Part shown: positions 1 through 32,000 of the stretch, in pieces
Numbering within the stretch: the stretch's first letter is position 1
Layout: each line of letters opens with the position of its first letter
Assembly: GCF_000400465.1 (NCBI RefSeq)
Contig: NW_008806288.1
Location: 210,001-242,000, forward strand
From: Wallemia ichthyophaga EXF-994
Taxonomy: Eukaryota > Fungi > Basidiomycota
Length of the DNA: 32,000 nucleotides
Direction: 5' to 3'
The notes under the pieces: generated by a model
The model's input: the letters and a program-made list of their open reading frames with translations, nothing else
What the model was told of the DNA's origin: nothing
Databases searched by the model: none
Program-made: the position numbers and the translations under genes

Positions 1-813
1 GCTGGGCATGTGTAGCTACTCAAATGAGTAAAAAAGGTTGATATAGTAACGCCTAGACTCCATAAATCTGTGCTGCGCGCATCGTAGCATCTGCTACCGA
101 ATATAAGCTCTGGCGCTCTATATGCACCCGTTGCAAGCTCAAAAAACATGCCGCCGTTCGGATGCTCATTTTCCATACCCAGACCATCCTCATAGGCAAC
201 ACCAAAGTCAAGGAGCTTTACACAGCCATTACCATCGAGTGCAACATTGGAGGGATTGACGTCACGATGGGCTACTCCGACCTCAGACGAATGCAAGTAC
301 TCGACGGCGAGAAGAAGCTGATAGATGATAGACCTAGCTATGTGCGTAAATGGAGAGAATGAAGGGACGAAGTCCGGGTAAGAGAGTATCATGGATAGTG
401 GGAGCGGTTGCAGCGGTAGAGCAAGAATGTAAATTCTATCAGACTCGTAGGCATTAAGGAGGCTGATAATGTTTGGATGGTGTGTGCGGGATAGTATAAA
501 TGACTCCCTGAGCGCATCGTGAGGCAGCCTCTTCTTGTTGATGAAGACGTTAACAGCCTTCAGGGCGATCCAGCCATTTATACCGCCGATATTGTCATTT
601 ACTCGTCGCTGGCACCGGTAAAGCAGTCCATGTCTGCCTTCCGTCAGCGGCTCAAGAGTGTCCTTTGTTTAGTCGTGAGAAAACGACCAAGTGCGGAAAT
701 GTACAAACCTCGTCTATAGCTAAGCCATTGCCTTTAAGAATACCCATTGCAATTAAAGTCTGTGGATTAGCATCGTTTAGATCGCTACCGGCAATCAATG
801 ATGTTGAGCTCAT
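1..813 (-). CDS. Ser/Thr protein kinase, CMGC/CDK-like, probably fungal Csk1/Cak1-like CDK-activating kinase; 3' end lies outside the window
   Basis: Manual translation of the minus strand. Exon 813-709 (MSSTSL...AIDE), intron 708-663 (GTTTGT...CTAAAC-AAAG, 46 nt), exon 662-<1. Kinase motifs in order: degenerate G-loop EGRHG, WIALK, PHDALRE (alphaC Glu), HPNII, HRDVNPSN, KLLDFG, TGAYRAPELIFG, DLWSLG. Not in the ORF track because the frame runs off the window. Confidence 0.9.
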
Positions 814-946
814 CAGCGTGTGGGCATAACGAACAAATTGCCTTGAATTGGTGATCAAAGTGTTATTTTGCTAAGATACATTTGTATTGGCTTTACATTC
901 TAAACTTATTCGATGCATTTAAACTCATCCGTGCCTTTCAGCGTGC

Positions 947-2216
947 CTATGGCTTTAGACTGCCGACGTCACACGACGAGGCTTTTCCGTCTATCATAAT
1001 CTCACTCAGTACCTTACCAGTACCTGTATGTGCGTGAGCTTAAGATTACCCATTTACGCCAAAACCCACCAACTCCAAGTGTTATTCCCCATACTGTTTC
1101 AGATATCAGTCATTGCGATAATAGAATATCAGGTAGTTACTCACCCGCATGGCCAGCTCCAATAAAGACTCCATCACTCACCTTTCCAACTATTGGAGAA
1201 TGTGATGCTGATATTGGCAAGTAGCACGCTTGTTCCTTTTCAACAGACATTGAGCTGTCGAAGTAATCCGATATCAATGCCGATTGTGATTTGAGGTCTG
1301 CGATGGCGGATTTTGATGGTACTACTTTAGACGCATCTTCGGGGAGAGGAACTGTGTCGGAAGCACCACAAATATATGCTGTGCCTTGAGGTCTGCAGTA
1401 GATCTCTGGCTCGTGGGTCGTCGTTCTCTCCTTCACCATAGTGAATAGACAGTGGTCAGTGAGTGTTTTGCCCTGGCTTGGCCTAACGATTATAGAGTGC
1501 GCTCTCTGTCCTGTCACGCTGCACTTTCTTGCTTCTGCTGGTGACAGTAGCTTCTGTGCGAGTCTGCCTGTCCATGGGCCAGCTTTGAGGCTTTAAGCAT
1601 AGAAAAAAAGCCAACTGCAATACCCACCTGCTAAGACGACATCAGTTGCAGGTATTTCAACAGAGTTACCCTCTTTCGTCTGCGCTCGAACCGAGAAGAT
1701 ATTGCCATCGTTGTCTCGATTGACCTGCTCAGCTGACGCGATTACCACATCTGCTTTACTCAGTTCAGCGAGAGTTTGAACCAGAGGTTCTGGTGTAACT
1801 TGTGCTGTGCTTGGTGGTGTACCGAGAACGCTGCACTTGTCAACGACCTTGTCACTCAGCCAATGAGCGCCCTTCTTTTTTGCATCATCCACTTTGCCTT
1901 TCTTTGGGCCAACTTGACCCATAAGGCTGAGTGCGTTGACAGGCCTGTATTCCCAGTTGTTGACACCGTCGTACTCATCGGAGAGCTGCTTGTGCAAGCT
2001 GTAGGAAAGCTCTGCGAGGCCCTCTGTATCTGGGCCATGCCAATCTTCTGCTAGAAATCCGCCTGATTTCCCAGATGCAGCTGATGCAATGGCTGTTGAT
2101 TCGACAATAGTAATCTTGTCGCTGTCTGGATTAAATTGGGAATGCTTGCTTATGTAGTATGCTGTGCTGCTGCCTATTATACCGCCGCCAATGACCACGT
2201 ACTGTCTGGCTGTCAT
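947..2216 (-). CDS. TDA3: FAD-dependent oxidoreductase, DAO family, similar to yeast Tda3
   Basis: Exons 2216-1628, 1582-1145, 1093-1070, 1023-947 (1128 nt). Motifs: N-terminal VVIGGGIIG dinucleotide-binding motif, ASGKSGGFLA, VVLAAGPWTG restored across intron 1, EQACYLP, GHAVWGITLGVGTG restored across introns 2 and 3. The gene symbol is from family recall only. Confidence 0.85.
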
Positions 2217-2348
2217 TTTCGTTATCTTTGGAGAAGCGAAACAAACGTCGATAAATATTTTAGGCCGACAAATCAAATATTAGCTGTCATCTCCCATCTC
2301 TCAAATATATTCCATGTTCTCGCTCTGTCTTCTCAAACTGCTACTGCG

Positions 2349-5300
2349 ATGGACTTAGCGACTGTTTTACTCGGAAGTCTGTCACCAGACACAGCGCAGA
2401 GAATGTCTGCTGAGCAGTATCTCGAGACTTCTCAGTCAGATCCAAATTTCCCGCTCGCGCTCACAGATCTCATCGGCAACGTCGACAACCCAATACACAC
2501 GCGTCAGATAAGTTGATATCTCTCGCGCCCTTTTCCAAGCTTACAAGGTAGTCCACTCAGCTGGAATTATTCTCAGAAAGTACGTCAACGAACGCTGGTC
2601 GCCTTTCTTCGTCGCGTTCAAAGGAAGTCCACCACCACCAGATGTAAGTTTGAGCTATTTGAGCTATTTCCAGGGATTACATGTTGTACTGATACTATCA
2701 CAGATCAAGGATATCATTAGGCAACGCTTGTTCTCTCTCCTCTCAACCTCACACAAGCAGATCAGAACAGCTTGCGCATACGCCTTGGCTTCTATAGCCA
2801 GCTGCGACTATCCAGAGCAATACCCCTCTCTACTTCACGATCTCGCTCAGCTTTTCCAGCAAGCTCAAAGGGATGGTGTTCACGGCGCAATGAGAGTTCT
2901 TCTCGATTTCGTCAAGGCGGATCTTACAGAGACGCAACTCGTCCCTGTCACTCAGGAGCTGCTACCACTATTGCTTCACATCCTCAAAAACCCTACATAT
3001 GCAGACAGCACGCGTGGTTTGACTGTCGCTGTCCTACGCCAGTGCGTCCTTACTCTCGAAATGGTCAAATCGACCTACCCAGATGCTGTTAAAGAGATTG
3101 TGAATAGTGTTATACCAGTGTGGATTGACGGTTTCATTGCTCTTCTCCAAGTACCGCCTCAGAAGGAAACCAGGTCCCAGTGGGGTATTAGGTTCGAGAT
3201 CATTAAGACAATCGCATCCGTCTTCTCGACTTTCAAATCACTCATCACTACAAACAACAACATTGAAAGCTTGACACGCATTTTGATAGATCATTTAGTG
3301 ACACTGTTGCCCATCTTTTACGATCGACAGGTCTATGATACCCAGTCATATGAACAACCTGAAGGCGAAGAGGAAGACGACGGTGCTGCTGTTGAAGAGC
3401 TCATCTGTCCTATTATTGACTTGTTGACTGGTTTTGCGAACAACAAACATACTAAGGGTACCATCGAACAGGCTATTCCATTGCTTGTTAAACTTTCACT
3501 CGAATGGGGTCAAATGACTGTTGAAGATGTAAGCCGTGAGTTTTCGCTCATAAGTATGCTAAGAATCCCATAGGAAGACACCTGGATCTCAGATCCGAAC
3601 GCATTTGTTGATGACGAAGACGATGAAACGGAAAATTACAGCCTAAGAATAGCCACTCATGACTTGCTGGGAGTTCTGCTCGACAGATATCCAACACCAA
3701 CTGCAAAAGTTTTGGGTCCAGTGACTGCTGAGCTGTTGTCTACGTCCCAATCTGCTTCACAAGAGGGTAAGCAGCATTGGTGGAAGCCAATCGAAGCAGC
3801 ATTGGCAGCAATTGGCAACCTTTCTAATCAGCTTGGCGATGAGGACAACGAAGCAGCTGAGCACTTTGATTTGATGGGATTGTGTCAGAGTGTCGTTATG
3901 CAATTTGTAAACGCGAACGAGTCTCCTTTCTTACAAGGCAGAGCATTTGTATTTGCCTCCAAATTTGCCGGTAACCTGCCACCTGATCTCGCAGGCGCAT
4001 TCGTTGATGCTGCTGCCGCGATGCTCAACCACAGCAATGCAGGTGTACCGGTAAAAATCAGCGCTGTGCGCGCGATTCGCAACTTTGCCAATGGACTAGA
4101 TGATGAGATAGTGGGACCAAAAGCATTGCAGATTCTGTCATCGATCGTACCCCTTCTTGCCCACACTACAGAATCGACTTTAGGATTGCTTGTTGAAGCG
4201 GTGGATAGTGTACTCGATACGCTCAACACTGAAGCTTTGACAACAGAACTCGTTGTTCAGCTATCGTCAGTTATTCTGCCAGTCTGGGAGAAGAACGTCA
4301 ATGATCCTCTACTGGCTTCGCAGTTGGATGATCTCTTTGTCACGCTTTCTGAATCAGGCTCCAAGGCCCACTCGGCGCTTGTTGGCATAGCTGTCAAACC
4401 GCTTATCGGCGCTGTTAGTCGCGCTGCACCGGGACAGCCAGGTGGGGAGGATGTTGATGCGCGCTTGTTGGCAAGTTCCGCTATTCAACTTATCAATTCT
4501 ATCGTCAGGGCTAGAAGTGAAGGTCTAGAGCCTGGTGTGATAGCCACGACTTGTCCCGCCCTCTTCAACATACTCGAGAGTGCCGATGATCGCACACTAA
4601 TGCAAGATGGTATTGAGTTGTTGACGACATATATACGCAAAGACATACAAGGGTTGTTGGAATGGAAGAGTGACTCGCTCGTTCGGATTCTCAACATCAT
4701 TGCCAAACTTCTTCAAACGGATTCAGAAGGCAGTGCACTTTTTATCGGCGATGTCGTAACACATCTCTTCCGTAACGTGTCCAAGGATATACTCGACCCA
4801 GCTCTCCCCCAACTTCTCAAAGTAATCTTAGATAGATTGGCACTGAGTAAGACATCAGCATTCACACAGAACCTAGTTATACCATTCACATACCTGATTC
4901 ATACTCGCAGAGAAGTCATTTTGGAATATCTCTCTAATACTGCCGTGCTTGATGTTAATAGTAACAGTATGGTCAGTGGATTGGAGGTTTTGTTGAGAAT
5001 GTGGTGCGATAATGCAGAAACTTTTAGGGGTTTCTGGGCCATTAGAATTAGTACTCTTGCATTAGTGGATCTGTACACTAGTCAAGATCCTCGCCTAGAT
5101 AGCGTAATGGTCAAAGGCGACCAAATTATTGATGAGTCGAATCGGAACACCATTATGACGCGTTCCAAGACCCGCAATGCGCCTATTGAATTTACGAGCA
5201 TACCCTTCCCGCTCAAAGCCATCAAATTGCTTCTTGGTGAAATACAGAATGTGGGCACGTCGGCTGCTAAGTCTAACACTGTCAAAGATGTAGATGAGGA

Positions 5301-5678
5301 TGATGATGATGATGACTGGGAAGATGACGATCCACTTGCTGGTGCTGATGATGAGATCCATTATCTTTCAGGTGGGTTTTCGTGTGGCTAAGTTGTTTTC
5401 ATCTAACTTACGCCAAACAGATCTGCTTTCACCAGGTGGTGATCTTCTCGACGATGGTGATGCAGATGCTGAAGATATGCGCGATGATCCAGACTGTCAG
5501 ATCGACATTGGGGTTTGTTTTTACAAGTCAAAGCTGGCACAACTAACACCGCTCACAGAATTACTTGTCCGACTTCTTAAGAACGGCGTACACAGCTAAC
5601 ACATTCAACACACATGATAGATGCGCACATTTGAGTGCTCAAGAACAGGCTATATTTCAACATGCCATGGTAAATTGA
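2349..5678 (+). CDS. IPO9: Importin-9 / Kap114-like karyopherin-beta
   Basis: Exons 2349-2507, 2557-2643, 2704-3528, 3574-5371, 5421-5512, 5559-5678 (3081 nt). IBN_N motif RQSAGIILRKYVNERWSPFF, IASCDYPEQYPSLL, WISDPNAFVDDEDDE, HEAT-like helical content, acidic loop DEDDDDDDWEDDD and C-terminal D..DDP..QID motif. Confidence 0.9.
2508..2556 (+). other. Candidate AT-AC intron (U2-type signals), importin-9 intron 1, 49 nt
   Basis: CAG|ATAAGT...GCTTAC...GTCCAC|TCA GCT gives RQSAGIILRK. The GT-AG alternative 2512-2560 (donor GTTGAT) gives RQITGIILRK. Confidence 0.7.
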
Positions 5679-5693
5679 TGTAGAAGCCTGTGT

Positions 5694-5714
5694 TGGTTAA
5701 TGGTTAATGGTTAA
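5694..5714 (+). repeat. (TGGTTAA)x3 microsatellite between the convergent importin-9 and seipin stop codons
   Basis: Three exact 7-nt units. Confidence 0.8.
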
Positions 5715-5745
5715 TTTAATATGATCACATGACTGCAGCCGAATT

Positions 5746-7026
5746 TCAACCGTTGGTGTCATCATTGTCATCGTCCGAAGCCCGGTAATCTCTGCCTGTT
5801 CGATGACGCAGGTTGGATGGTGTGAGGCTTCTTTCGGGTGTTGATGCTGTTGGCGTTTCCACGGAGTCTTCCGATTCACTACTATCGTAGGCGTGCCATG
5901 GCGATGAAACGAATGATTCGACCGACTCTGCTGAATCGGCTGGATCGGCTGACTGTCCATCGAGCGTGGCTGATTCTGACAGTGTTTCATCGTCTATTGA
6001 TTGTTGCGCTGTTTCTTCCCCATCTTCGATTGTGTCTTGTGGTGTTTCTAATTTCTCTTCTAGCTGTTTAGGCTGACGCGTGCCACACCACACTAGCATA
6101 GCTACTGACCAGATACTGACAAAGGAGAGAGCGGTAAAAATTATGAAGGAACTTATTGGGAAAGCGACGAGTAGCCAGCTGTGAATTGCATTGTTAGCTT
6201 AACTTCCGTTCTTAACTCTCAACTCACCTCAAGCCTGCTAGACGGATATTAAAGAGAAGGGCAGCGTCATAGACGTGCAGCTCCTTTTGTGGGAGGGTAT
6301 TATTAGCTGTGCCAATCCAATCCTGTCGGCCTACTGTCACTGTCGCTGCTGTGATGGTCATCTGGCGGAGTGAGCGCGTAGATGGTTTGAGTATTTGCGT
6401 CGATAATGGTATCTTCATTGTTTGGGTATTCTTGTAGAGGATGGATGTTATCACGCTTGGATGCTGCCAAGTAAGCAGAGCCTTACGTGTTAATGTTAGT
6501 TTATATGATTTTGATCACTCCTGCACGTGACAAGTAACACGTAACACAGACACGCACTGGTTTAGAAGTAACTAGTTCGCTGCTGAACGTGTTCTCTAGC
6601 TCAAGCGTTATCATGAAATTGCCTGGGATGAATCAGACATGACACAAAGAACAACAAAGCAGCCAGCCCACCCAGATTGAGATTATTGATGCTGTTCGGT
6701 ATGTGCATCTCGAGTGTGATGTCATAGGTCTGGTCCGCAGAGACCTTTTGCGTTGGGATGCTGATTGTATCGAAAGGCACCTTGCCCACGCTGAAGGGAA
6801 TAAGCTTGGTGTTGCGATGTCGATGGATATTGGAGACGCACCCATATTGCAGATGCACAGGCACTGACCAGCCGCGTGAAGGTACAATATACCATCTAAA
6901 CGAACTGAACGACAATACAGCGCTAATTATACTGAGATACGTTATGATGAAAAACACAGCGACCCTCAACAGCCATCGAAGCAGCCGCGAGTTGAGTATT
7001 CGCGATAAAATAGCATTCGCTGTCAT
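5746..7026 (-). CDS. SEI1: Seipin (BSCL2/Sei1/Fld1), lipid-droplet biogenesis protein
   Basis: Exons 7026-6842, 6790-6672, 6622-6558, 6481-6228, 6178-5746 (1056 nt). N-terminal TM helix, VPVHLQYG, DQTYDITLEMHIPNS-N-NLGNFMITL, ELHVYDAAL-F, second TM (LRWLLVAFPISSFIIF), acidic disordered tail. Confidence 0.88.
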
Positions 7027-7029
7027 TTG

Positions 7030-7190
7030 CGGACTGCCTCGTCTTGGTGGTTGAGGTTAGAGAGACCAAGCGATGATGTCAAACTTACTATTACTAGGAT
7101 TATCGCTCAAAGCGGACTTTGAACGGACTGCCAGGTCTTATTGAAGGTTAGAGAGTTAGACGAGTGAGAAAGCTTACTAGGAGTAACGCA
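7030..7190 (-). repeat. Imperfect tandem duplication (~94 nt period) in the seipin 5' leader; each unit resembles an intron plus exon start
   Basis: On the + strand CGGACTGCC..GTCTT..GGTTAGAGAG..CTTACTA starts at 7030 and again at 7124. On the - strand this gives intron-like segments 7088-7043 and 7177-7137 with GTAAG donors, CTCTCTAAC branch points and AAG acceptors. Confidence 0.65.
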
Positions 7191-7495
7191 GAATATTTAC
7201 AGGGAAAGGCTTATACCCACCTTACTATGGCCCCCAAGACGGCGAAACGCTAGGAAAATAGGAAAGAAGTGCGCTCCCCTTTAATACCACAGCAGTGACC
7301 AAAAAGCACGTGGCTCGTGCCTTGCCTTTGTTTGTGTTTCACGAACCCGCTACTCTCGTTCCTACTCACGCGGCTAACGACGTACACGCATATGCTCAGC
7401 TAATTGTCCTCGAAGCTCTCGGTACATTTATTGATCTTAATTCTGACTGTTGGTTCTCGATTAACTTCGTTCCTAGTCAAGTGTTTACAAGCAAC

Positions 7496-8426
7496 ATGGA
7501 TATTGGAATGTTGGTCGATACGCACTGCCACCCTACTGATAGCAGTGTTGTAAACCTCAGTAAAAGTACTGCGTCTATGTATGCCATATGTGCTATGTCG
7601 ACGCATATTGAGGATCAAATTAAAGTTGAGGAGCTACACGGCGTGCATCCGGACGTTGTGAGGCCTTATTACGGTGTGTAAGGGGTGTGTGTGTAAATAA
7701 TGCTCATTCTACACAGGATTCCATCCGTGGTGGTCGCATATTTACACTTTCACGGAAGGCATAGGGAAGAAGGAGCACTATGAGGCGTTGTTCCTTAATG
7801 GTAAGAAGGAAGACATCAAGTTGCAACAGATAGACGCCTTATTAGATGCATTACCATCTCCTATCCACTTTCAGATACTGCTCGATGACGTAGAGAGAAG
7901 ACTGCAGCGTAATGCACGAGCACAGGTCGGCGAAGTAGGAATAGACAAAGTGTTCAGAGTAAAGGGTAAAGACGGCAAGTTGACGCTGCTGCAGACGTCT
8001 ATTGAGCATCAGAAACGAGTCGCTGTGGAACAAATCAAGCTGGCTAAGAAATACAATCGGGTGGTGAGTATGCACAGCGTATCAGCGACTCAAGGCAGTA
8101 TGGATATCATTAGAGACGCGGCTTATCAGAAAATAGTCCTCCATAGCTGTGGAATTGGCAAAAATGGCATAGATTACTGCCAGCGACAGTTTCCTGGTGT
8201 GCACATTGGATTCAGCACAGCAATAAACACACGCTCAATGAAAGTACTGGAAGATAGTATCGCAGTCACGCGTCTAGACAGAATACTCAGCGAGAGCGAT
8301 CTTCCTGTTGAAACAGAGTACGCGAATGCAGTTGAGTCAATTGTGGAGATAATAGCCAGAGTTAAGAATAAATCCCGCTCGGAGATTGTACACTACATCA
8401 AATCCAACTTTGATAAATTATTCTGA
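7496..8426 (+). CDS. TatD-family metal-dependent nuclease/amidohydrolase
   Basis: Exons 7496-7673 and 7717-8426 (888 nt). Motifs DTHCH, GFHPW (restored across the intron), VGEVGIDK, SMHSV, VLHS, LSESD cover the full set of TatD metal ligands. Confidence 0.88.
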
Positions 8427-8459
8427 TTACATCGCCACTCTTTACCACATACGTCCACG

Positions 8460-11400
8460 ATGAGTGGAAAAGAGAACGTGAGATTAACGCTATTGTTTAG
8501 AAATACGCTGACAATAGCAGCCCCAGCATGCTCAGTTTCAATACGCGGCCATGTCGTCGCTTGTATTGCAATCCAACAGGTCAGCGAGGCCAGATGAACC
8601 AACAGGCCAGGCAGAAACCTTGGCTGGCAAAGTAACCGCAAGAGATATGGGTACACGAGCCACAAGAGAAACTGTGAAAGATAAGGACAAGAAGAAGCTC
8701 AAATCGCAGATGGACGACGATGGCTCTTCCACAGCCAAAAGATCAGCTTCTAATAAAGGCTACGGATACAGCAATATTTTAGAAGCTACACAAGATATGG
8801 AGGGTTTGGATTACAGGCCTAGAACAGCGGAAACCACTCAAGTCTACGAGTTGATTCTCTCAGTCGTCCATTCGATACTCGGTGATACTCCTCAAGATAC
8901 TATCAGATCAGCTGCCGACGTTGCCCTCGGTGTTCTCAAAGATGAAAGCTTGAAAGATTTCGACAAGAAACGTGAGATTGAAGGTTTCGTCGGCCATATT
9001 TCTGAGGAGCTCTACTCCCAGCTGCTAGGCCTCTCCAAGAAAATAACCGACTACGGCGATGCAGATGTCGTTATGGCCGATCCGGACGCTGAAAAGAAAG
9101 AGGGCGAGATCGACGATGAAGGTGTCGCACTTCTTTTCGAAGATGATAACGAGGAAGATGACGACGAAGAGCGTTACGAGGTTGGTGATGATCAGTCAGA
9201 AGATGAAGAGAAAAATGATGTCGAAGAGGAACAAGAGCAGCTTGACGATGATGGCAATGCACTCGTCATTGGCGGAGAGAAGAAACAGTCAGCTGAATCG
9301 CGTGGCAAGCTAGCAGCCACCGACGTTGATGCTTTCTGGCTTCAAAGAATTATCGCTCAACACTACCCTGACCCTGTTGAAACTACCGAGAAGACGTCCG
9401 CGGTATTCGATCTTCTGGCATCTGAAGCTGGTGCAAGAGAAGTCGAGAATGGGTTGATGGATCTATTTGATTACGAGAGAGACCTTTTTAAACTTGTTCA
9501 ACTACTGCTCATCAACAGAGATTTGATATATTGGTGCACAAGATTAGCGAGAGCATCCGATGACGAGAAAATGGATATTGAAGTCACAATGCGTGAGAAG
9601 GGTGTTGGATGGATTCTTCGCGAGCTTAAGGGTGAAAAGCCAAAGCGGGAAACTGGTGAAATGGCTATGGAGGTTGATCAGAGTAAACAAACCGTACCAA
9701 GCAAGGCTACCCTCGCTCCTGGATCCACCGTCGCTCCAAAGCGCGTTGTAGACTTGGATAGCATGACTTTCTCGGCCGGTGGTCATCTGATGTCAAACAA
9801 GAGGGTCAAGCTCCCTGATGGCTCATTCAAGCGCTCGAAGAAAGGATACGAGGAAATTCATGTCCCTGCTCCTAAAGTTACTCCTGTCAAGGAGGGTGAA
9901 TTGGTTCCACTTACCAAGTTGCCGGAGTGGACGAGAAAAGCATTCCCAGGTACCAAAGCGCTCAATAGAGTGCAGTCTAAGCTTTACCCTGTCGCTTTTG
10001 GTCAAGATGATCCAATTCTGCTTTGTGCCCCAACTGGTGCAGGAAAGGTGAGTATGTACAGAAAGAATGACTTATGCTAACTTTTTTTTCAGACAAATGT
10101 GGCAATGCTTACTATTTTAAATACAATTTCACAATATAGAGACGAAGAGACTGGTGCTATTGATTTGGATGCGTTCAAGATTGTTTATGTCGCACCAATG
10201 AAGGCGCTTGTACAAGAGCAAGTCGGCAGCTTCAGCAAGAGACTGGAGCCATTTGGCGTCAAAGTTAATGAGTTGACTGGTGATAGCCAACTCACCAAGC
10301 AACAGATTGCTGAAACTCAGGTTATTGTCACTACACCAGAGAAGTGGGACGTCATCACCCGTAAATCAACTGACACATCGTACACTAACCTCGTAAGACT
10401 GATGATTGTTGACGAGATCCACTTGCTTCACGATGACAGAGGTCCAGTACTGGAGTCGATCATTGCGCGTACAATTCGTAAAATGGAGCAAAACAACGAA
10501 TACACGAGAGTTGTCGGTCTGTCAGCTACTCTTCCAAACTATCAAGACGTAGCAGCATTCCTCAGAGTGGACATCAACAAAGGTCTCTTCTACTTTGACG
10601 GCAGTATGCGTCCGTGTCCATTGCAGCAGCAATTTGTAGGTATCACCGAGAAAAAAGCTATCAAGCGTTTCTCCACAATGAACGAGGTTTGTTACGAGAA
10701 AGTGTTGGAGCAAGCTGGCAAAAACCAAGTCATTGTCTTTGTTCACTCGCGCAAAGACACTGCAAAGACAGCTAAATTCCTCCGTGATATGGCCATCGAA
10801 AAAGATACTATCACTCAATTTGTCAACGCTGATTCAGCGAGCAGAGCCATTCTGACAGAGGAAGCTGAGAATTCCAGTAGTGGTGATATGAAAGACTTGC
10901 TTCCATTTGGTTTCGCTATTCACCACGCTGGTATGACTCGAGCAGACAGAAACGCATCTGAGGATCTTTTCGATAAAGGACACGTCCAAGTGTTGGTCTG
11001 TACGGCTACATTAGCCTGGGGTGTCAATTTGCCTGCACACAGTGTTATTATCAAGGGTACACAGATCTACAATCCAGAGAAAGGTAGATGGTGCGAATTA
11101 TCTCCACAAGACGTCTTGCAAATGCTTGGTCGCGCAGGTAGGCCGCAGTATGATACATTCGGAGAGGGTATTATTATCACAAACCATACTGAGCTACAAT
11201 ACTACCTCAGTTTGATGAATCAGCAGTTGCCAATTGAGTCGCAATACGTTAGTCGACTCGTCGACAACCTCAATGCAGAAGTCGTTCTCGGATCGATCCG
11301 TAATCGTGACGAAGCTATTCAGTGGCTCGGCTATACTTACTTGTACATTAGAATGCTGCGCTCACCAAGCTTGTACTCTGTTGGCGAGGACTATGATGAT

Positions 11401-15393: not shown

Positions 15394-15480
15394 AGTTGCC
15401 TTTGAAACTAATACAGTGTCGTACATGATAGTATATCGCAATAATATAAGGCTATCTGCTCTCGATCAACAACCATCATC

Positions 15481-20519: not shown

Positions 20520-20592
20520 AGCGTGATGAAAGATGGTGTTCGAGTTTGATAAGAAAGGCACAGAAAGGCACAAAGTGGAGTTTAAATACATG

Positions 20593-21541: not shown

Positions 21542-21669
21542 ATTCAAACAAGGTTTTGTACAACAGGATATCATTTGTACACCAGAGAAGGTAAAATTGA
21601 GAAATTGGAAATTATCTTTGTCATAATTGAATGTGGTATATGTGATATACGTGTATATACTTGTATATT

Positions 21670-22523
21670 CTAACGCTTGCGTGAGTTGGATGCACAAGTT
21701 GATGATCTTCTCCTGCTTTGAGTCTTTGAGTCTTTATCATGTACTCTAAGGTGCTGATACATCTGTGAACAGCTTCAGTTATTAATTTAATCCTATTAAA
21801 CACACTCACGTTATCTAACCGGGTGAATCTCTTGTTACACCCAGCATCTAAACATTCAAATGGTTTCTCGTCTCTATGTAAGCTCTTGATATGTCTCTTG
21901 AGATGCTCGTTCCTGACAAATACCTTCTGACAGCGAGCATCTGGACATTTAAACACGCGCTGATTGTCTTGCGTAGGCACTCTCCGTCCTCTACTACGCT
22001 TAGTAATATCCGTGTCAACCATTGGCGTTGGTGACTTTGCTCTAGGGTGACTATAAGCTGACTGTCCCCGTTTGGCTGAGGTACCGTGCTCGGCATGTGC
22101 ACAACCCCAATCGTCATCATCGTCGAAATCTCCTTCAACGAAATCATCAGCGTAGTCATCGTCATCTAATTCTTTCTCATCCAAGCTATTTTCTTCCTGT
22201 TGCTCGTATCTTGGACATGTGATAGTCACGCCGTTATCGTCAGTCAAACGCAAGCCGAGATCGAAATCGAGTGGAGGCGGTACAGTGATATGTGATGGAT
22301 TGATGGATAACTCATTCATTGGTATAGACGATGGCAGTGATCTGCTGTTATTAAACGTTGTCTCCCGCCCGAGTATGTTTATCGGCGGCAATGAGGAGCT
22401 GTACTCTGGTGGGCTATCCACGCCCATTGACGATAGACTGTAGTTGTTGGATGCATTCGTTGATGGCGACCAAAGCAAATCGTCATTCGGCTGCCTGTAG
22501 TCTGTGTACTTTTCCGCGCTCAT
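21670..22523 (-). CDS. C2H2 zinc-finger transcription factor, Msn2/4-Seb1 type (STRE-binding family)
   Basis: Exons 22523-21810 and 21762-21670 (807 nt). Two fingers: FKCPDARCQKVFVRNEHLKRHIKSLH-RDEKPF-ECLDAGCNKRFTRLDN|MYQHLRVH. The second finger is completed only after splicing. Confidence 0.88.
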
Positions 22524-22834
22524 AGATTAGCGTGATTAGCGTGATGATAGGATAATTCAAAGAAAATTAAATGCAATTAATTCCGATTTTCCTTTCCTGT
22601 TTACCAAATCGGCCAAGTCAAGCCGAGGTTCTTGATTTCCTATCGTTCTGTCTCTCAATCCCAGACACGTGCTGTGCTTTGGGAAAATTTGACTTTATTC
22701 ATGCATATGTCAAAGAAATTTGTGATTTCTTCGAATTTATTGATTCTAATTGACATTTTTTACTTAAGCCGCGGTATTTATCACAATACAAACTCATCTA
22801 GGTGAAAATATGCATAGTTATTGTACAACATTCG

Positions 22835-24193
22835 TCAAACCAATCTCAAACTCAATTTGAAAGGTAAGTTAGCGTCAGTGACAAGAATAGTCTGTCCTTT
22901 ATAATCTGAGAGTGATTTACTCAGATTTTGGCGAGTATATTCCTCTAATTGTGGTGGGTATTGAAGATAGATATTCCCTTGATCGTTACTGAGTGAAGGC
23001 TTCCTCACTTGAAACTCTGCTTTCTGCTTCAATATCTCAAGCAAGTCCTCCACAATCATTTCGTCTTTAACTTCCAAGTCCATCGTTTCACCACCGCACA
23101 CCACGCAGCTCTCCCTCTTCTGGTGCTCGAATGTATAGGTGAAGACACCCTCATTTCCTATGAACATCATGTAATTGTTCAAATATGCAGCTGTTGTCGT
23201 CGCTATTTTGAATGCTTCATTGCAGCAACTTGCAGCGATGATTGCGTTTGTTGATGCGACTGATGGTATTATGTTTTTTACGACGCCCTGTACCAATGAC
23301 CAATTCACTCCCTCAATATTAAACTCCGTGGCTCTGGTGAGAGATTTGTTGAGCAGCCACTCGATGTGATCTGGGTCGTCGTTATCGAGCTTTTTAGATG
23401 GGAACACTTTAGGCCATTCCAGCACACTGGCCCATTCAATGCAGTGCTCGGGCAAGCGTGGAGTGTTTGCAATTGTACAGATCGGGAAGGTAGTCGGTGG
23501 TGTGAGCATATCCAAGCTACACTCGTAGCAACTGCTGATGGTGGGTAAAATTACTCTCGACTGGCCTTTAAAACCCTCCGTACCGCCATCGATCAATGGC
23601 TTTAGCGACTCTGGGTTATCGTCATCGACCATGTTGTAGAGAGTTGCGTTTATCCAGCGCCGAGCTTCCACGCTATCCAAACCACAAACCACCAAGTTGA
23701 ACTGCATATAAAAATCATCACCAAAGTCTTGTATCTTGTTGTGGTGGGCTGTTACTTTAACGTTGGGTATACGCTTCATCACAAAGTCTGCAGCGGCAAC
23801 TGCCTTTGATTTGCCAACATCTGAGGATCTGAACAGGAATTGACGGTTGAGATTTGAGACGTCAATGGTGTCCTTGGAGGTCGTGAGCCTTCATCGCTAC
23901 ACGAAGCCTAATACTAACCATATCGATGATATGAAGATCTGAGAAGCCAGTGAGAGCGAGATTAGCTACAATCTCACAGCCTAATCCACCGGCACCGATG
24001 ATAAGAACTTTGCATTGCTCCCTCAAGAACTTCTTAACCTGAGATTACTCAGTCAATTGAAGTAATTAAGTCTTACAACACCCACATCTTTTCCAGCTTG
24101 AAAGTACTCGTCTGTAAATGGCCCTCCTTTCTCCAGTACCTTATCTACGTGCGCGTGTGTCTGTGTATGTGCCTGTCCATTTCCGTGGCTCAT
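22835..24193 (-). CDS. UBA3: NEDD8-activating enzyme E1 catalytic subunit Uba3
   Basis: Exons 24193-24086, 24038-23919, 23872-22835 (1266 nt). Motifs [49 protein letters not shown], catalytic [16 protein letters not shown]-terminal E2-binding domain. Confidence 0.96.
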
Positions 24194-24278
24194 CCTTGCT
24201 CACTGTTTGAGAAGCAAAGCGCAAATGACGAAATGAGCAAATAAATATTCAAGAAAATAAATGAGATTACAAATTACT

Positions 24279-27200
24279 TTAATTGTTTCTACTCTTTTTG
24301 TTGCTGCGTGTATCTGAAATACTCGATGAAGCTCGCTTATGCGAAGGCTGAGGACTCATCGTGTTGTATCTATTCCTAAAGTCATTCAGATTGCTCACTG
24401 CCATCTTCTCCAATGCCTTGGCTGATAATGAAACAGGCGCATCTGCTCCATTGTAAAGTATTGCGTTGTGCGTCATTAACTTTATATCACCCTCAAACGC
24501 ATCCACCGACGGATATTGATCTTTTTCCAGTTTCGTCTGTATCAAAGACAGATCTCTCATGTTCTCTTTAGGTATTACTTCGTTATAATTTGGAATACCC
24601 AATGCAATTGGATCAACCTATATATAATCGTTAGCATGTTTCAATTACGCCATTCCAAAACGTACCGGCTGTAAGAACCAGAAAGCATGCTCATTCTTGT
24701 ACCATACTTTCATCATCGATAGCAAGCTCCTCTTTTCATTGTGCGGGATCTTCGGCGTCATTAGTATCTTCCACTCTTTCCTCAAAGCTCTCTCCACTGG
24801 GTCGCAAGTCTGCGCAGTCAACATACTTGTCTCACCAGGACCATTGAATTGTCTGCAATTCTTAAATATTTGTTCTATATCTCCGATGAATTGATCGCCA
24901 TTCTCGTACTTTTTCTCGTCCAACTTCCTGTTTATTGTAGAGAAGTCCATCGGATGCTTGATCTCATCCAGATACGTTGGACAACCATGCAATATGGGGT
25001 CGACTGGCTGTAAGAATATTGCGGCCTCAGGCATGCTCATCAGTTTTCTAATCAAAATCTTGGCTTTTCTGTTATCAAGATGACCGTCCGGTAGCTTTGA
25101 AGGAGTGCTTGAAGATGCTTTGGGAGGTGGAGGCATTTTTTGCACTGGTTTGTTATCTGACAGAGCCAGAAGCTCATCATCGAGTGCGTCTTCGTTGCCA
25201 TTCTGCACTGGAGCAGAAGTAGGAGCTGGAACAGGCGCAGGCGTAGACGTAGGTTCATTTTCTTCTGGTAGACTCTGTTGAGCTGGAACTGACTGTGCTT
25301 TTTCCATAGGTTCTTCTGGTGCCTCTGATACCGTGACCGGAGCTTCAGGAATAGGTTGAGATTGAGATTCTTGCATACTTGGTGCTGCAACAGGCTGTGT
25401 GTCAGCTGGTGTAGCGTCAGTCTGGATTTTTTCTGCGGTTGATTCTGGTTCAGGCGCATCTGATTGAGCAGTTTGCGGTGCTGCCGCTGTATCCACCACC
25501 CCATTAGCTTCAGGTTGCTTTTCCTTATCGCCATTACTATCAACAGGCTTAGGCGGTTTCAGCTTAAGAGAAAGCCTAGGCTTGGCTGGTTGTGCTGGAG
25601 GTGGACTTGGTTTAGATGGCGAAGAAATTGCCGCAGCCGGTTCTGGTTCTGGTTCTGGTTCTAGTGCTGGTGCTGGTTCTGGCCCCGTCGGAGGACTTGT
25701 CATCTTATCATTGACTTGCACAGTAGGCTTACGTCCTGTAGCGGCATTGAGCGTGTTCGTCATTCGCTGCCATTGCTTATCGAAGACTGCATCTAGCTCC
25801 AGCGCGGTCTTGTGCACTGGTGACGATGGACCATTGTAAGTCGTTGCATTTTGAACGATCAACTTAAAATCAGCTTCATATTCGAACCTGTTGGCGTAGT
25901 GTCCACCATCCAACTTAGCTCCCATGGTTCCAATGTCCATTGGCGTTTTAATCACCGAAAAGTAATCAGGCGCACCGTCTCTGACTGGGTCAACTGGATA
26001 TAAGAACCACCCTGCCAACTTGTGTGATTGTAAGCGCTTGTGAAGAGCTCTACAAGCAGTGACGTCTTGACTAGCCATACCATTCCTTTGAGCTTGAGGA
26101 ACAGCTTTGTCTTTCTTCTTTCTAAGCGAAACATTCAATCCACCTCCACCAACAGGTTCAGTAACGTGTCCGTTTGCTGTACCATTCATCTCTGGTACTT
26201 CAGGCTCAGGTGTCTCATCTTCCATACGAACCGGCACAACGGGATCCATACTGACTGGTACAGGCTGCGCTGGTTGTGACGTCGGCGCCTTGAGCTTGAT
26301 CTTCATCGGCATTGCAGATGCTGGCTCTGCTGGCTGATGAGGTGCTGGGGCAGGTAACTTGAATTTAACTTTAGGTAACGGCTCAGCATTGCCTTTGTAT
26401 AGAACATCACAGAGCTGTAGCAGCGTCCATCTAACGTGGTAATCGACTTGAGGGGATAGCAACACAGCCATGATACCCATTCTCAAACTAGCAATTTTTC
26501 CGACATCCTTTCGAAGCCCCTTCAACTGCCGATCCAATTCGCTCTTACTAGAATCTTTCTCTTTCGCTTCGCTCAGCTTAGCATCTTCTTCAATGAATTG
26601 CGGTTCCTTCTTCTGAATAGCAGCCAATTCCCCAGTGGCCATGAGAACAATCAGCGATTCGATCATCGATTGGGCAAGCGACCTTCTGACTACTCTTGAT
26701 TCATCGTATCCAAGTATTGTTGAGAAATATTGAATAATTGGTCGATGGCGGAGAGAACCGAGCAGCATCAAGCAATCGAAAGCGACTATCCTTAAAGGAG
26801 GATAGTTACCCTCTCTGCACGAACTGTAAGTAACGTAAAGGGACGTGTTATGTTTTCTCACCTTGTATAAGGAATAAACAAAGGTGCGTTGTATGGTAGT
26901 ATACCGGCAATCATTAGTTTGACGTTGAATTCAAGGGTAGCTACGGATATAACGTTCTGATAAGATGGTACGAGTCTATCCATGGTTCTATACCTCTCAA
27001 CCTCTTCGACAGCAGCACGTCGAATGAGGGGACCAAATGGATGGTCATCTGCATCCGGATCCTCGTCCTGTTGAAGTACGCTGGCCTCATGCTGAACCGT
27101 CGGCACTAGTGCGATAGCCAAGCAGTTGATGATACCAGATAGGTAATAGCTGTCTGAGTACTAAAACAGAGTAAGCGGTGAGACTCTCAAACAAAAGTCA

Positions 27201-30191
27201 CTCACTCTATTTGTCGAATTGTCATTGTATTTGAGCTGATCGACGAGGAACTCTCTAATGTTCAGCATAGATCTACTCGTTTGATCTCTGATAGAAGTTA
27301 AAGAAACGATGACAGCCTTACGAACGAAATATTCGCTGAGGTCGTCAAAGTTGTTAGCCAGCGGTATACACTTGAAACCAAAAGGATCCATAATTTCTTG
27401 CGGAGGTGGATAGCAGAATCTTGACTGGAATATCTTAAAGAGGTGGAACATTCCAACATAATCCAATTCAGGAGTTGCACAGGTATGCAGCACCATAGCA
27501 GCTTCCATTCTAATTCTAAAGAAGTAATTGGTGACCAGAACAGTCCTGGTTAGTTGAGTGGAAACCAGTTTGGAAGGAATAGACTTGAGCGCGTGGACAG
27601 CTTCCAACTGAGCAACAACATCTCTATCACGCTGTAGTTGGGACACCCACATGAAATCAGGTTGCTCAAAAGTAATCATGGAGATCCATTCAAAGTCTGC
27701 ATCAACTCTGATCCACTCGTACGTTGCTTGTGACATAGCAGCTTCATCATCCTCGGTCCAATCTTCTACCTTCCATCTGTCTCTCTCCGATTCCTGTTCC
27801 CAATCGTTGAGCTGGAAACCCAAATCTATCATACCAATAGCCTCAGCAGCCTCTTCATCACCTTGGGCAGCAGCAGCAGCAGCAGCTTGTCTAGCTTGAT
27901 AACGCTTTGTGTTCCTTCTAACACGCTTATATTTCGTGTTGAAAGGCACATCGAATCTCTTGTTGGGTTCCTTTATATCCAAAACATGCTCATATGGTGT
28001 ACCATCAGCTTCGTGAATTCTAACAGTCATCTGACCTTCAAAAACTTGGGTTGGCCTGTTAAAATGAATTTCAGGTGTATCGGGTGTATGTGCGTCATAT
28101 GCTGGTGATTCTTGCTTTACTGTCATTTCAACGCACATTTTCTTTCTGTTAAAATTGGCTCCAATCATGAATCTAGGTGTACCAGATCCAAAAATCCATT
28201 GATCAGCAAACGTTCTTAAATCAACTCCGGCAACTTTTCTGCAAGTCCTCAAGAATCCATTTGTTGATATAATAACGTCACCAGAAAGCGCGCCCAGGAA
28301 GATTTTTGGCAGAACTCTAGACAATCCATGAGCTGTACCAGATTTAGATAGCTTTCTATCGAGAATGTGCAAGACAAGTGGTGCTTTCAAGAGTAAAAAT
28401 GGTGCGTCGTTATCATTTGGTGGTTCAAGCGCATTTGGTACGCTAAGTGGTGGTAGTTGGCCCGTATCATTCATTGCTAAACGATCCATATCCTTCTTCA
28501 TTCTAAAGAAATACTCATTGTTACCCATAGATTTCTTCAAAAAAAGATTTGCAATATAGCTAGCTAAGCCTTGAACTAGCCACATATCAGACCAAGATCT
28601 TGGCATGATATTAATACCAGACCATTGAGTGGCAAGAGCGTGTGATATTTTATGGCGAGTATCCAACGTCTGTTCGATAGCAGATGCAGGGTGCAGAAGA
28701 TCTAGAGACATGATAACGACAGTAGAATACACAGTGACGTCTACCGGAGGATCATGCACGAAAACGACTTTGAAGGAAGAAAATGGGTACATACCATGCT
28801 CTGAGCTGTAGAAATGAAGAGCACGTGGAACTATAGCTACGGAGGCGGCCAACTCTTTAGCAGAACCAGGTGGACCAAAAGCGTGTAGGGAAGTGGATTG
28901 GGTGGTGCTAGAAGTATGCGGTATTGGTAGGACGTTGAAAGGACCAGCTGCAAAAGCAATATGCTGTACGGAAGTGGGTAGAGATTGAGCAAAGTGGAAG
29001 ATAGTCTTGGAGGATATCGATGGATGAGCGACTTGTTCGACTAAATCACCTGAAGAGACGACAACGACAGGCTCATCTTGTTCACCTTCAACGCCATCCT
29101 CGCCAACAGCACTTAAAAAGCGTGGAGTGATATATTCCAATTCCCACGTACATCTCTCCCAAAGACTGTCAATACAGGGGACCCAACAGCGGGCAGCATC
29201 GGGGCATGTAGGAGAGGTGTAAATGTGAGGGATGCGATAAGGGGAAGTTTCTGTTGGCTTGACGACTTGTAGGCCTTCGAATGGATGAGTGATAGAAAAC
29301 TCAACGAAGATGGTGAGAGGGGCGAAGTCTTGAGAGTTGTTAGCAGCCTCCTTGCTTTCCTTCTCCTTTTCTTTCTCTTTTTCTTTCTCGCTTTGCTTTT
29401 GCTTCTCTTTCTCATTCTCGTCGTGCTTTTCTTGGTTGTGGTTCTCTTTATCCTTCTCTTTGTCATCCATGTGCTCTGCTTGCTCGTCTTTATGCACTGA
29501 TTGCTCTGTACCATTCTCTGCGTGGCCTGCATCTTTCTCTGCTTGCTCTTTATCGTTATTATCTTTCTCAACGTCTGTCTCGTCAATCCGCTTCTCCTTA
29601 TCTTGAGCAGAAGGCTCATCAGGAAGTAGGGAAACCTGATCGCCTACGCCACGCGAGATACAACGAGGCGGGAGGACAATACTCAGCTCGCCTTCATCGC
29701 CTTCAGAAAGGGCAGAATAGACTTTACGCTTGAGTTCGGGATGGCGGTGTACGTCGATCTTGCCGTCTTTGCCATGGCGTTCGCTAAGGGCGATATTCGA
29801 CTGAGGGTCGAAGTGGGTGAAATCAGCGTGAGCGGGGGCAGCGTGAGCGTGAGGTGGGGTGACGAGGACTCTGTGGATATCTGTGGAGGTGTGAGCCAAA
29901 TGGGCGTAAAGGATCACCGCCCAACTCACTCGCCTGCCTCGAATGGATGTTGACCGTCTTGAGAGCGTCTGTAGTGGGAGTGATAGTGAGTTCGGTGAAT
30001 CCCTGAAGAGTGTAAGCGTGATTTCAAGGCGTGCAATTGCCGCTTCACGCACCCTGAAAACACCGCTGAAATCGACCTCGAGACAGACTCGCTGGTGGGT
30101 TGTTTGCGGGCGTTAGAATGACCGCGTAAATTATCAGTATAATCACTTATAAGCTAAAGCCGCGCTTGTGCGCTTCTCGTGAAACGGCCAT
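24279..30191 (-). CDS. TAF2: TFIID subunit Taf2 (aminopeptidase-like fold) fused to three C-terminal bromodomains
   Basis: Exons 30191-30151, 30101-30053, 30002-29930, 29880-27206, 27160-26862, 26814-24666, 24617-24279 (5625 nt, 1874 aa). Motifs FSLTHQRVCLEVDF, ARCWVPCID, WSDMWLVQG, GQMTVRIHEADGTPYEH, EWIRVDADFEW, WVSQLQRDRDVVAQLEA. Three bromodomains follow (see findings). Confidence 0.95.
30102..30150 (-). other. AT-AC intron (U2-type signals), TAF2 intron 1, 49 nt
   Basis: AGC TT|ATAAGT...TTCTAAC...GCAAAC|A ACC CAC CAG gives RGFSLTHQRV. Read-through hits TAA, and the nearby GT lies after that stop. Confidence 0.8.
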
Positions 30192-30220
30192 CTTCACTGA
30201 TCAACTACCTATCTTTCGAG

Positions 30221-32000
30221 ATGATGGCTGTTGCTTCACAAGCGACTTCGAGTGAGGCGATACACCGTCTGATGCACCAATCCACTCAGCCTGTCTCGCT
30301 GGCTGTGATTAATTCCAAACGCAATCCTCCCCATCCGCCTCGCCCGCCACCCAGACAGAAGCGTCAGCGCAGGACTGCTTCCACTGCGCTAGTCCTTCTA
30401 GGAGCCGCAGATACTTCTTGTAGCGATAGAGAGGCTTTATTAGCAGCACTGCGTGATGCAGACAGTAGGATTTGTGGGTCTCCTCTTTTTTCCTGGTTTT
30501 TTCTCATTCTGTGGCGCAGTCGATGGCCAGCCGCTGCTCGAACCCGATCAGTTATTCGCGGTGGGCGATGTAGCGGGACAGCCTCTCTCGCCATCTCCAT
30601 CTCCGTCTCCATCGCCCTCGCTCTCGCCGTCTCAACGTCAGCCTCCTCCCGCTAAGGTCAAAGGCGCGACACCGTTCGAACGCGTTGACGTCGGCTGCAG
30701 CGACGACGACGGCGACGGTGTGGTCGACATCACAGACGAGTTGCGCGAGAAACATCACAAGCGGTGTGAGTACGATGAGCGACGCATTCGCAAACTAGAG
30801 AAAGAGCAACTGGTGCATGACCGGTACAAGTTGCAAGAGAAGCAAGACGCACTCGCGGCGCTTGAGTTGGAGGACAGCGAGGATATACCCGAGGAGGTGA
30901 TAGCACTGTCGAGTGGGATCTCCCTCGAAGACCGCCCACTAGCTCTCGAGCTACAGCAGAAGCTGTTGTACGAGAACGACAAGATGCTCCAACGATACGA
31001 CCTTCTCCTCAAATCTGATATTAAGGGGAGAGTATATCCCAAACCGCAGTACTCCTCTAACCCGTCCCCGTTCGATGTTCGCTGTGTTGGCGATAAGGGC
31101 ACGTACTCCGCCAGCGAACAGATGCGCAGCTTGGAGCAGAGAGTGTTCAAGGTGGACATGCAGTCGCCGTTTAGAGTCAGATTGAAAATGCCTCCCTCGA
31201 CGAGAAAGTCGCTTAAGTCTTCTCAGAATATCTTAGCCTCTCCACTCAGTCGCTTCAGGACGCCTCTGACTCCCAAGACACCTGCTGCTGCTGCTGCCAC
31301 TAGCAATGCTCCTTCGGCTCTCTCTATAGCTGCAGATGCCCGCCTTACCTCACGATCACAAGACAAAAGTAGAAGAAAGTCACAGCGGTCGCTCGTAGCT
31401 TTCGGTGTGAATATACCCAATGAAATCGATAAGGAGCGTGAATTCAGTCTCGTAGATGCAGCCGAGGGTTATGGGCTGTGGACTGGGACAGAGAACGAGT
31501 TTGACAGTAGGAGGATGTGGGAGGACGCTTTGTCGTGCAGAGAGCGAGGAGAAGCGCATGTTTTCGCAACCACAAGTGCAGATGCCGCGAAGCCAACCGT
31601 ATCTCTGCCAGTGGGAACGATGACGACGCCTAAGAGGACTTTAGCTGGGGCTGACGCTGCTTCAGCGTCTGCATCTGCATCTACTTCAACTACGCCTGCG
31701 TCGGATGAAATGGAGTGGGTCGAATCACCTGCATCACCTTCATCACCACCTTCTTCTACGCCTAAAACGTCACGGGAGATGTATGCACAGCTGTCAACAC
31801 CCAAACGAGGCAAGAAACGCGGTAGGAAATCGCCGATGCGCGCTGAAAGCAGTAAAAGTATTAAAATCGATAATAAAAAGACATCATCGGTGACGGGTAG
31901 AGGACGAGGTAGACCGCCGCGGTATGGTGAGAATGTTGAAAACAAACCGCAGGAACCGAAGCTTAAACCGGGAACGGTAACTTCCACGATTAGAGGAAAG
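30221..32000 (+). CDS. SAS4: Sas4-domain protein (SAS histone acetyltransferase complex subunit 4-like); 3' end lies outside the window
   Basis: Exon 30221 (or 30272)-30473, intron 30474-30519 (alternative donor 30465), then a frame open to 32000. DITDELREKHHKRCEYDERRIRKLEKEQLVHDRYKL resembles the Sas4 domain. Also SLVAFGVNIP...EFSL, an SP repeat and AT-hook-like GRGRGRPPR. Domain identity is from recall, not a search. Confidence 0.65.

Follow-up and report, generated by a model that had tools for sequence, protein, structure and literature searches.

Two putative U2-type AT-AC introns, in importin-9-like and TAF2 genes, in a 32 kb window of the Wallemia ichthyophaga genome

The window analyzed here is the whole 32 kb stretch at positions 210,001–242,000 of contig NW_008806288.1 of Wallemia ichthyophaga EXF-994, and it contains two introns with AT and AC termini, one in an importin-9/Kap114-like gene and one in the gene for TAF2. 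Gene models were built with a dynamic-programming exon chainer, and every gene was then curated by hand with the aid of frame logic, Pfam matches and syntenic contigs of relatives. The result is 14 genes with 41 coding introns, and all coding sequences translate without stops. The genes encode a partial protein kinase, a DAO-type oxidoreductase, the importin-9/Kap114-like protein, seipin, TatD, Brr2, a GATA factor, an amidohydrolase, a Methyltransf_16 protein, an RluA-type pseudouridine synthase, a C2H2 protein, UBA3, TAF2 (with bromodomains) and one poorly conserved protein. The catalogue of coding introns spans 663–30519, and Rfam and tRNA scans of the window yield no matches. The genes are eukaryotic and densely packed, with very short introns, and the GC content is 45.5%; the reported value for W. 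ichthyophaga is 45.41% (PMC6738226). The window is an ordinary gene-dense part of a compact basidiomycete genome, and its introns are standard short U2-type introns.

Several relatives, close and distant, were available for comparison. A Logan assembly (L001), with exons of ~88–90% nucleotide identity, is syntenic with window positions 1–14030, and ENA metagenome contigs of a 30%-GC relative (L003–L006) are syntenic with 18260–30200. Contigs L003–L008 share 65–82% protein identity with the window, yet differ strongly in base composition (30% versus 45.5% GC). An annotated syntenic relative has 41% GC (L011, NCBI GCA_004918025.1). More distant are two annotated Agaricomycetes, Stygiomarasmius scandens (L009) and Suillus hirtellus (L010), an annotated basidiomycete genome whose class placement is partly inferred (L012), and a genome that we take to be Kwoniella (Tremellomycetes; L013, GCA_000512565.3). 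The TAF2 loci of sockeye salmon (L014) and Limulus polyphemus (L015) represent animals. The best named matches to the TAF2 protein are from Agaricomycetes at only ~50–55% identity, which places the window in a basidiomycete outside that class.

Intron lengths are narrowly distributed: 39 of the 41 are 40–55 nt, the outliers being 60 nt (2644–2703) and 76 nt (6482–6557), with a median of 48 nt and 49 nt as the commonest single length (8 introns). A first-pass annotation, made from the sequence alone, had traced 43 introns, 41 of them about 40–55 nt long; this length pattern is reproduced, and the count is corrected to 41, the other two not being found. Its description of GT donors as loose at +3 and +4 and nearly invariant for G at +5 is borne out, and the donors it quoted (GTGGGT, GTTTGT, GTGCGT, GTGTGT and GTAGGC) are all present. 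Among the 38 GT donors, position +3 is G in 26, A in 9 and T in 3, and position +4 is A in 16, G in 10, T in 6 and C in 6. Position +5 is G in 37 (40 of 41 donors overall), the sole exception being GTAATT at 15675. Exactly three donors are not GT, namely ATAAGT at 2508 (+), ATAAGT at 30150 (−) and GCAAGT at 20346 (−), each in a 49-nt intron. As the annotation had stated, all three carry AAGT at +3 to +6, against 2 of the 38 GT donors (Fisher p = 0.0009), and both AT donors pair with AC ends in 49-nt introns that are the first of their gene in the window. In contigs L003–L008 the donors track base composition, with GTTAGT, GTAAAT and GTAAGT in place of GTGAGT and GTGGGT, and both AT-AC donors remain ATAAGT.

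The first AT-AC intron lies at 2508–2556 (+) and is intron 1 of the importin-9/Kap114-like gene (2349–5678, + strand; 1026 aa, 5 introns), which has Pfam IBN_N and HEAT_IPO9_c matches and syntenic orthologues in L001 and L011. The other introns of this gene are at 2644–2703, 3529–3573, 5372–5420 and 5513–5558. The AT-AC intron is 49 nt long and in phase 0, and reads cag|ATAAGT...CTTAC(N12)AC|tca with the branch site GCTTACA. Left unspliced, it presents an in-frame TGA at once, and its length is not a multiple of three. AT-AC splicing gives NPIHTRQ|SAGIILRKYVNERW (HTRQ|SAGIILRKYV), a hallmark motif of the importin-beta N-terminal domain. Relative to L001, identity drops from 0.81 in the flanks to 0.53 inside the intron, and indels leave a net length difference of 2 nt, the same behavior as that of every other intron.

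The importin site is conserved well beyond the closest relatives. AT...AC termini occur at the identical phase-0 position in six taxa, the window and five basidiomycetes both close and distant, and the intron interiors cannot be aligned. The introns read ATAAGT..CTAAC..TAC in L001 (51 nt), ATAAGT..GCTAAT..TTAC in L011 (47 nt), ATAAGT..CTAAC..ATAC in L007/L008 (52 nt), ATAAGT..CTGACCAGCAC in L012 (61 nt) and ATGAGT..GCTAAC..CACAC in L013 (61 nt). In all six taxa the product is RQ-SA[G/S], and the codons vary synonymously (TCA/TCG and GCT/GCA/GCG), as expected for Ser-Ala. More distant orthologues have RQSAS, RQSAG, RQSAA or RQSAT, and one protein (P0055) has RQAAG.

The second AT-AC intron lies at 30150–30102 (−) and is intron 1 of TAF2 (24279–30191, − strand; 1874 aa, 6 introns), followed by introns at 30052–30003, 29929–29881, 27205–27161, 26861–26815 and 24665–24618. 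It is 49 nt long, reads ctt|ATAAGT...TCTAAC(N10)AC|aac with the branch site TTCTAAC, and is in phase 2, splitting the codon for Leu14 after its second base and before THQ (AGC TT|ATAAGT...CGCAAAC|A ACC CAC CAG). The only ATG of TAF2 (30191) opens MAVSREAHKRGFS, which runs into a TAA at the donor if the intron is retained, and exon 2 contains no in-frame ATG and is preceded by an in-frame TAA. AT-AC splicing gives KRGFS-L-THQRVCLEVDFSG (THQRVCLEVDF). The spliced protein aligns without gaps to P0014 (KRGFSVTSQKVSLEVDFSG) and P0032, from relatives with no intron at this site, and it also aligns with residues 24–80 of human TAF2 (RPYKLTHQVVC...).

The 30%-GC relative (L003/L006) has an intron at the same TAF2 site and in the same phase, ATAAGT...ACTAACTTCCACAAAC, 55 nt in length. 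Exon 1 (MAVSREAHKRGFSL) is identical at the protein level in L003, with synonymous changes only, and exons 1 and 2 together exhibit 18 synonymous versus 4 non-synonymous codon differences, the first 18 residues being identical. Because these differences are mostly synonymous, exon 1 is evidently translated in this frame. Stygiomarasmius and Suillus have ATACGT...TACTGAC...TAC introns of 61 and 59 nt, respectively, at the same codon and in the same phase. Salmon has a 140-nt intron (L014, 1066–1205) in which CCT TTT AAA TT|ATAAGT...CCCACAC|G ACT CAC CAG again splits the same Leu codon in the same phase. Thus, AT...AC termini occupy this site in five taxa: the window, L003/L006, Stygiomarasmius, Suillus and salmon.

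In Limulus the corresponding intron (L015, 1063–3508, ~2.4 kb) interrupts the same codon in the same phase, TTC AAA TT|ATAAGT...CATGCAA|A TCC CAT CAA, and has an AA end. Its termini are AT-AA, or TA-AA with the junction moved by one base; this is the junction of the RefSeq model (P0197), and it reflects either a natural A-A pair or an assembly error. This apart, AT...AC termini are present at the same codon and phase in every relative examined for the gene in question, and the first-pass proposal that both candidates are AT-AC introns holds on comparative grounds.

U2-type AT-AC introns, the 'AT-AC II' class, were reportedly recognized by Wu and Krainer in 1997. Both introns in the window have AT...AC termini at the junction that restores the frame, and both donors are GTAAGT with the first G replaced by A, in keeping with the U2-type consensus as set out by Sheth 2006. 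The U2-type assignment made in the first-pass annotation is therefore upheld, since the donors resemble GTAAGT and not RTATCCTT. Among all AT-AC orthologues the donor is ATAAGT, ATGAGT or ATACGT, with G at +5 and T at +6 always kept. The branch sites lie 11–13 nt from the 3' end, a spacing shared by the window's GT-AG introns. These features point to importin-9-like intron 1 and TAF2 intron 1 as probable genuine AT-AC II introns. Like the TAF2 introns of human and Drosophila, they combine AT and AC termini with an otherwise U2-consensus donor, lack U12 motifs and are deeply conserved.

An AT-AC II intron in TAF2 is already known in human and Drosophila (PMC1557818), and de Wolf et al. 2021 took human 'TAF2 (intron 1)' as an AT-AC control for the major spliceosome (PMC8280824). 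The window intron matches salmon and Limulus in codon (Leu before T-H-Q) and phase, and human in rank (intron 1); it differs from the animal introns in its fungal CTAAC branch site and its length of 49 nt, those examined in animals ranging from 140 nt to 2.4 kb. It appears to be the orthologue of the animal AT-AC II intron. The shared codon, phase and ATAAGT donor in salmon and Limulus indicate that the TAF2 intron predates the animal-fungal split; its AT-AC form may also date to before that split, and so be roughly as old as the opisthokonts. The importin-9/Kap114 intron may represent a second deeply conserved AT-AC II intron; in the literature, neither it nor the occurrence of the TAF2 AT-AC intron in fungi was found to be described.

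A plausible mechanism draws only on established spliceosomal contacts. U1 and then U6 would recognize the 5' splice site mainly through positions +3 to +6, here a perfect AAGT, and the usual CTRAY-like branch site 11–13 nt from the 3' end would be used. The first and last bases of the intron, which touch through a non-Watson-Crick contact in the second catalytic step, would here be A and C and not G and G. Suppression experiments in yeast and human, such as the rescue of a yeast G1A mutation by changing the last base from G to C, support this replacement (cited in PMC1557818). The yeast experiments supply a mechanism for A...C in place of G...G in a U2-type intron, but concern engineered, inefficiently spliced mutants, whereas the pairs described here are natural and conserved. 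The first-pass suggestion that a strong +3 to +6 offsets non-GT termini agrees with published knowledge of GC-AG and AT-AC II introns (PMC1557818), and is sound, if not new.

The GC-AG intron of the window fits the same principle. It lies at 20346–20298 (−) and is intron 2 of the Methyltransf_16 (lysine methyltransferase-like) gene (19489–20519, − strand; 266 aa, 5 introns), whose other introns are at 20429–20386, 19959–19914, 19835–19787 and 19709–19668. This 49-nt, phase-0 intron, aaa|GCAAGT...CAGTAG|agt, is the only in-frame solution, starts with GC and ends with AG, has a donor that is otherwise a strong U2-type site, and leaves the Pfam Methyltransf_16 match intact when removed. In L003 the flanking exon PSQGEPGAKFTFK is conserved, and a GT-AG intron lies ~3 codons away. 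GC-AG donors offset their mismatch with a stronger remaining consensus (Sheth 2006, PMC1557818), and the window intron follows this textbook pattern, with the U1 mismatch at +2 offset by AAGT at +3 to +6; nothing about it is unusual, and one in 41 is compatible with the usual ~1%. Other GCAAGT sites were rejected as being on the wrong strand or internal to exons. Four exon-chainer proposals were rejected on homology, the L001/L003 comparison and frame logic: 'GC-AG' introns at 7249 (GCTAGG) and 20902 (GCATGC), a 130-nt bridge between TatD and Brr2, and a 56-nt AT-AC variant at 30095.

Considered as a whole, the window very likely holds two genuine AT-AC II introns that are ancient shared relics and occur as a pair by coincidence. 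Both are regarded as frozen relics and not as a sign of relaxed or special splice-site rules in the lineage. Such relics most likely persist because a return to GT-AG would require two coordinated substitutions, each harmful alone. Their occurrence 28 kb apart is most simply a coincidence: in a genome of 9.55 Mb with an assumed 10–20 such introns, 0.26–1.1 pairs within 28 kb of each other are expected.

Several points weigh against this reading. The U2 dependence of both introns is argued from sequence and from the human orthologue, and the use of exactly these two AT-AC junctions from comparative genomics. The orthology of the TAF2 intron with that of animals is founded on junctions inspected in salmon and Limulus, with human represented by its published designation as 'intron 1'. 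AT-AC introns make up 0.1% of introns over 61 species (PMC3033335), ~0.02% in fungal annotations (PMC7072748) and 0.03% in fungal models guided by RNA sequencing (PMC4084796). At these rates two of 41 is improbable in a random window (P 7.5e-5 to 8e-4), although the window was chosen for its AT-AC pair and this probability does not apply directly. A modest enrichment of AT-AC introns in the lineage is possible.

The first-pass annotation had gone further, proposing that this lineage has a sizeable, unannotated class of U2-type AT-AC introns in which the termini are negotiable when +3 to +6 is a perfect AAGT, and which may act as rate-limiting first introns. This proposal is unlikely. It draws strength from the frequency of two in 41, ~100 times the published fungal rates, from the concentration of AAGT in the non-GT donors, and from public gene models that miss such introns, so that true rates are underestimated. 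Both introns, however, were inherited from ancestors shared with Agaricomycetes, and the TAF2 intron from ancestors shared also with animals, and thus they say nothing about a lineage-specific class. Nor is perfect AAGT a rule: the orthologous donor is ATACGT in TAF2 of Stygiomarasmius and Suillus and ATGAGT in the importin gene of L013. First-intron rank is not conserved either. In L007, L012 and L013 the importin AT-AC intron is intron 2, coming after an additional GT-AG intron, and its rank in the window is an accident of intron loss upstream. The length of 49 nt, which had been offered as a feature, is simply the modal length here, and orthologous introns measure 47–61 nt in fungi, 140 nt in salmon and ~2.4 kb in Limulus.

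The search for further members of such a class points the same way. In ~16 kb of additional sequence from two relatives, the ~25 further predicted introns are all GT-AG and none is a credible AT-AC candidate. Two matches to the AT-AC pattern in L003, at 4802–4847 and 5598–5657, were rejected as chance occurrences in AT-rich non-coding or junk sequence. Of the proposed unannotated class, the mis-annotation stands, the fungal gene models being wrong, but a lineage-specific class is unsupported, these being ancient orthologous introns. The related idea that a compact-genome lineage has an enlarged set of U2-type AT-AC introns (at least 1% of introns), with relaxed discrimination of the terminal bases under perfect U1/U6 pairing, is likewise improbable.

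A second alternative concerns only the importin gene, where a GT-AG intron shifted by +4 nt (2512–2560, GTTGAT...CTCAG, 49 nt) would give HTRQ-IT-GIIL. It preserves an open frame in the window, L011 and L007, and the NCBI protein model from L011 (P0043) is built on this junction. Four observations make it very unlikely. First, the required AG is missing in L001 (TCGG), L012 (TCCG) and L013 (TCTG). Second, the corresponding donors (GTTGAT, GTCCAA, GTGTAC and GTTTAA) lack the G at +5 that is present in 40 of 41 window introns. Third, the shift replaces the family-wide RQ-SA with RQ-IT. Fourth, the Pfam IBN_N score is 47.9 bits for the AT-AC product versus 43.8 bits for the shifted one. In-frame, stop-free GT-AG or GC-AG alternatives were enumerated for each taxon, and none is common to all taxa in either the importin gene or TAF2. 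For the importin intron, 2503–2551, 2512–2551, 2503–2560 and 2512–2560 were rejected, none being shared across taxa and all breaking the RQ-SA motif.

It is hardly conceivable that both introns are U12-type, spliced by a minor spliceosome. The AT-AC termini and a branch site 11–13 nt from the 3' end, inside the U12 optimum, are shared with U12-type AT-AC introns, but that short distance is also found in the GT-AG introns of the window. The donors ATAAGTTG and ATAAGTGA (ATAAGT) are not ATATCCTT or [AG]TATCCTT, and the branch sites GCTTACA and TTCTAAC are ordinary fungal CTRAY-like sequences, unlike the TCCTTAAC of U12-type introns. Neither RTATCCTY nor the U12 branch motif is present in the two AT-AC introns; RTATCCTY occurs seven times in the window, each time outside them. 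In human, TAF2 intron 1 is assigned to the U2 type and employed as such (PMC8280824). Signs of a minor spliceosome are weak in Basidiomycota (PMC2396436), and the lineage is very probably without one. Just as implausible is the view that these are not introns at all but the product of assembly error, pseudogenization or a downstream start codon: the same structure recurs in independent assemblies of 4–6 species, TAF2 exon 1 is under purifying selection relative to L003, TAF2 exon 2 has no in-frame ATG and a TAA upstream, and the importin intron carries an in-frame TGA and has a length not divisible by three.

The introns of the other genes in the window are all GT-AG. On the minus strand at the left end, the partial protein kinase gene has one intron at 663–708 (46 nt, GTTTGT) and the FAD oxidoreductase (DAO) gene has one at 1583–1627 (45 nt, GTGGGT). 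An intron-like GT-AG element of 46 nt, GTGGGT...ACATACAG, lies at 1024–1069 (−) upstream of the kinase start codon, where identity with L001 dips (0.61 versus 0.85); it is possibly a 5'-untranslated-region intron and is excluded from the coding-intron count. In L001 the kinase and DAO genes contain two extra introns (~44–46 nt; L001 ~7695–7726 and 8913–8958) that the window lacks at ~470 and ~1483. Conversely, window intron 20429–20386 is absent from L003, whose RluA gene has one extra intron. Intron gain and loss are ongoing within the clade of the window, L001 and L003.

The seipin gene (−) has four introns, at 6841–6791 (51 nt), 6671–6623 (49 nt), 6557–6482 (76 nt, the longest in the window) and 6227–6179 (49 nt). 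Between seipin and TatD, ~500 bp (~6960–7480) have no counterpart in L001 (alignment identity 0). A stop-free stretch of 139 codons (7262–7678) extends upstream of the conserved TatD start at 7496; it is not conserved and is probably non-coding. TatD (+) has a single intron at 7674–7716 (43 nt, GTGTGT). The gene for Brr2, the U5 snRNP helicase, lies at 8460–15233 (+; 2165 aa) and has six introns, at 8478–8517 (40 nt), 10048–10092 (45 nt), 12886–12935 (50 nt), 13196–13239 (44 nt), 14282–14328 (47 nt) and 15104–15153 (50 nt). These are ordinary GT-AG introns, the long exons are 94% identical to those of L001, and nothing unusual is seen in the gene.

Further along, the GATA factor gene (+) has introns at 15529–15576 (48 nt) and 15675–15729 (55 nt, GTAATT), and the amidohydrolase (guanine-deaminase-like) gene (+) at 18429–18480 (52 nt) and 18557–18606 (50 nt). 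On the minus strand, the RluA-type pseudouridine synthase gene has introns at 21436–21386 (51 nt), 21357–21306 (52 nt), 21018–20968 (51 nt) and 20787–20743 (45 nt), the C2H2 zinc-finger gene at 21763–21809 (47 nt), and UBA3 at 24085–24039 (47 nt) and 23918–23873 (46 nt). A gene divergent from TAF2 has an intron at 30474–30519 (+; 46 nt, GTGGGT).

The TAF2 frame itself runs on without a stop into a long C-terminal extension with at least two Pfam bromodomains (24666–26813) and a third visible by eye. In L003 the TAF2 open reading frame is followed directly by bromodomain reading frames, and the annotation of Stygiomarasmius (L009) places a bromodomain gene of its own immediately downstream. The window gene may thus be a TAF2-bromodomain fusion, in which a Bdf1/TAF1-like module is joined to TAF2.

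Public gene models handle both introns wrongly. Four of the five NCBI fungal models inspected force GT-AG splicing, with the result that residues in conserved motifs are changed or added. For the importin gene, P0043 (L011) reads RQITG and P0048 (L013) reads RQMRV; for TAF2, P0005 reads GFSIYVFHQ and P0011 reads GFSIYVFSFYPAFQHYQ through a 29-nt 'intron', Stygiomarasmius and Suillus using different GT-AG solutions. The fifth model, P0045, uses AT..AC but ends the intron 6 nt early. The L011 annotation also merges neighboring genes (NGP1 with a Mon2-like gene, DAO with the kinase, and TatD with Brr2). Since fungal models mis-splice AT-AC introns, the published fungal frequencies of ~0.02–0.03% are probably underestimates, and AT-AC II introns may be systematically mis-modeled, and hence undercounted, in fungal annotations.

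The existence of AT-AC II introns and the TAF2 intron of human and fly were known already; the fungal members and the importin-9 case may be new. The evidence does not support the headline claim that splicing in this lineage follows a negotiable code of its own. Fungal gene predictors should permit AT-AC introns with a U2-type donor. The TAF2 AT-AC II intron would be one of the most ancient non-canonical U2-type introns that can be traced, and it lends support to Sheth et al. in their view of such introns as 'frozen relics'.

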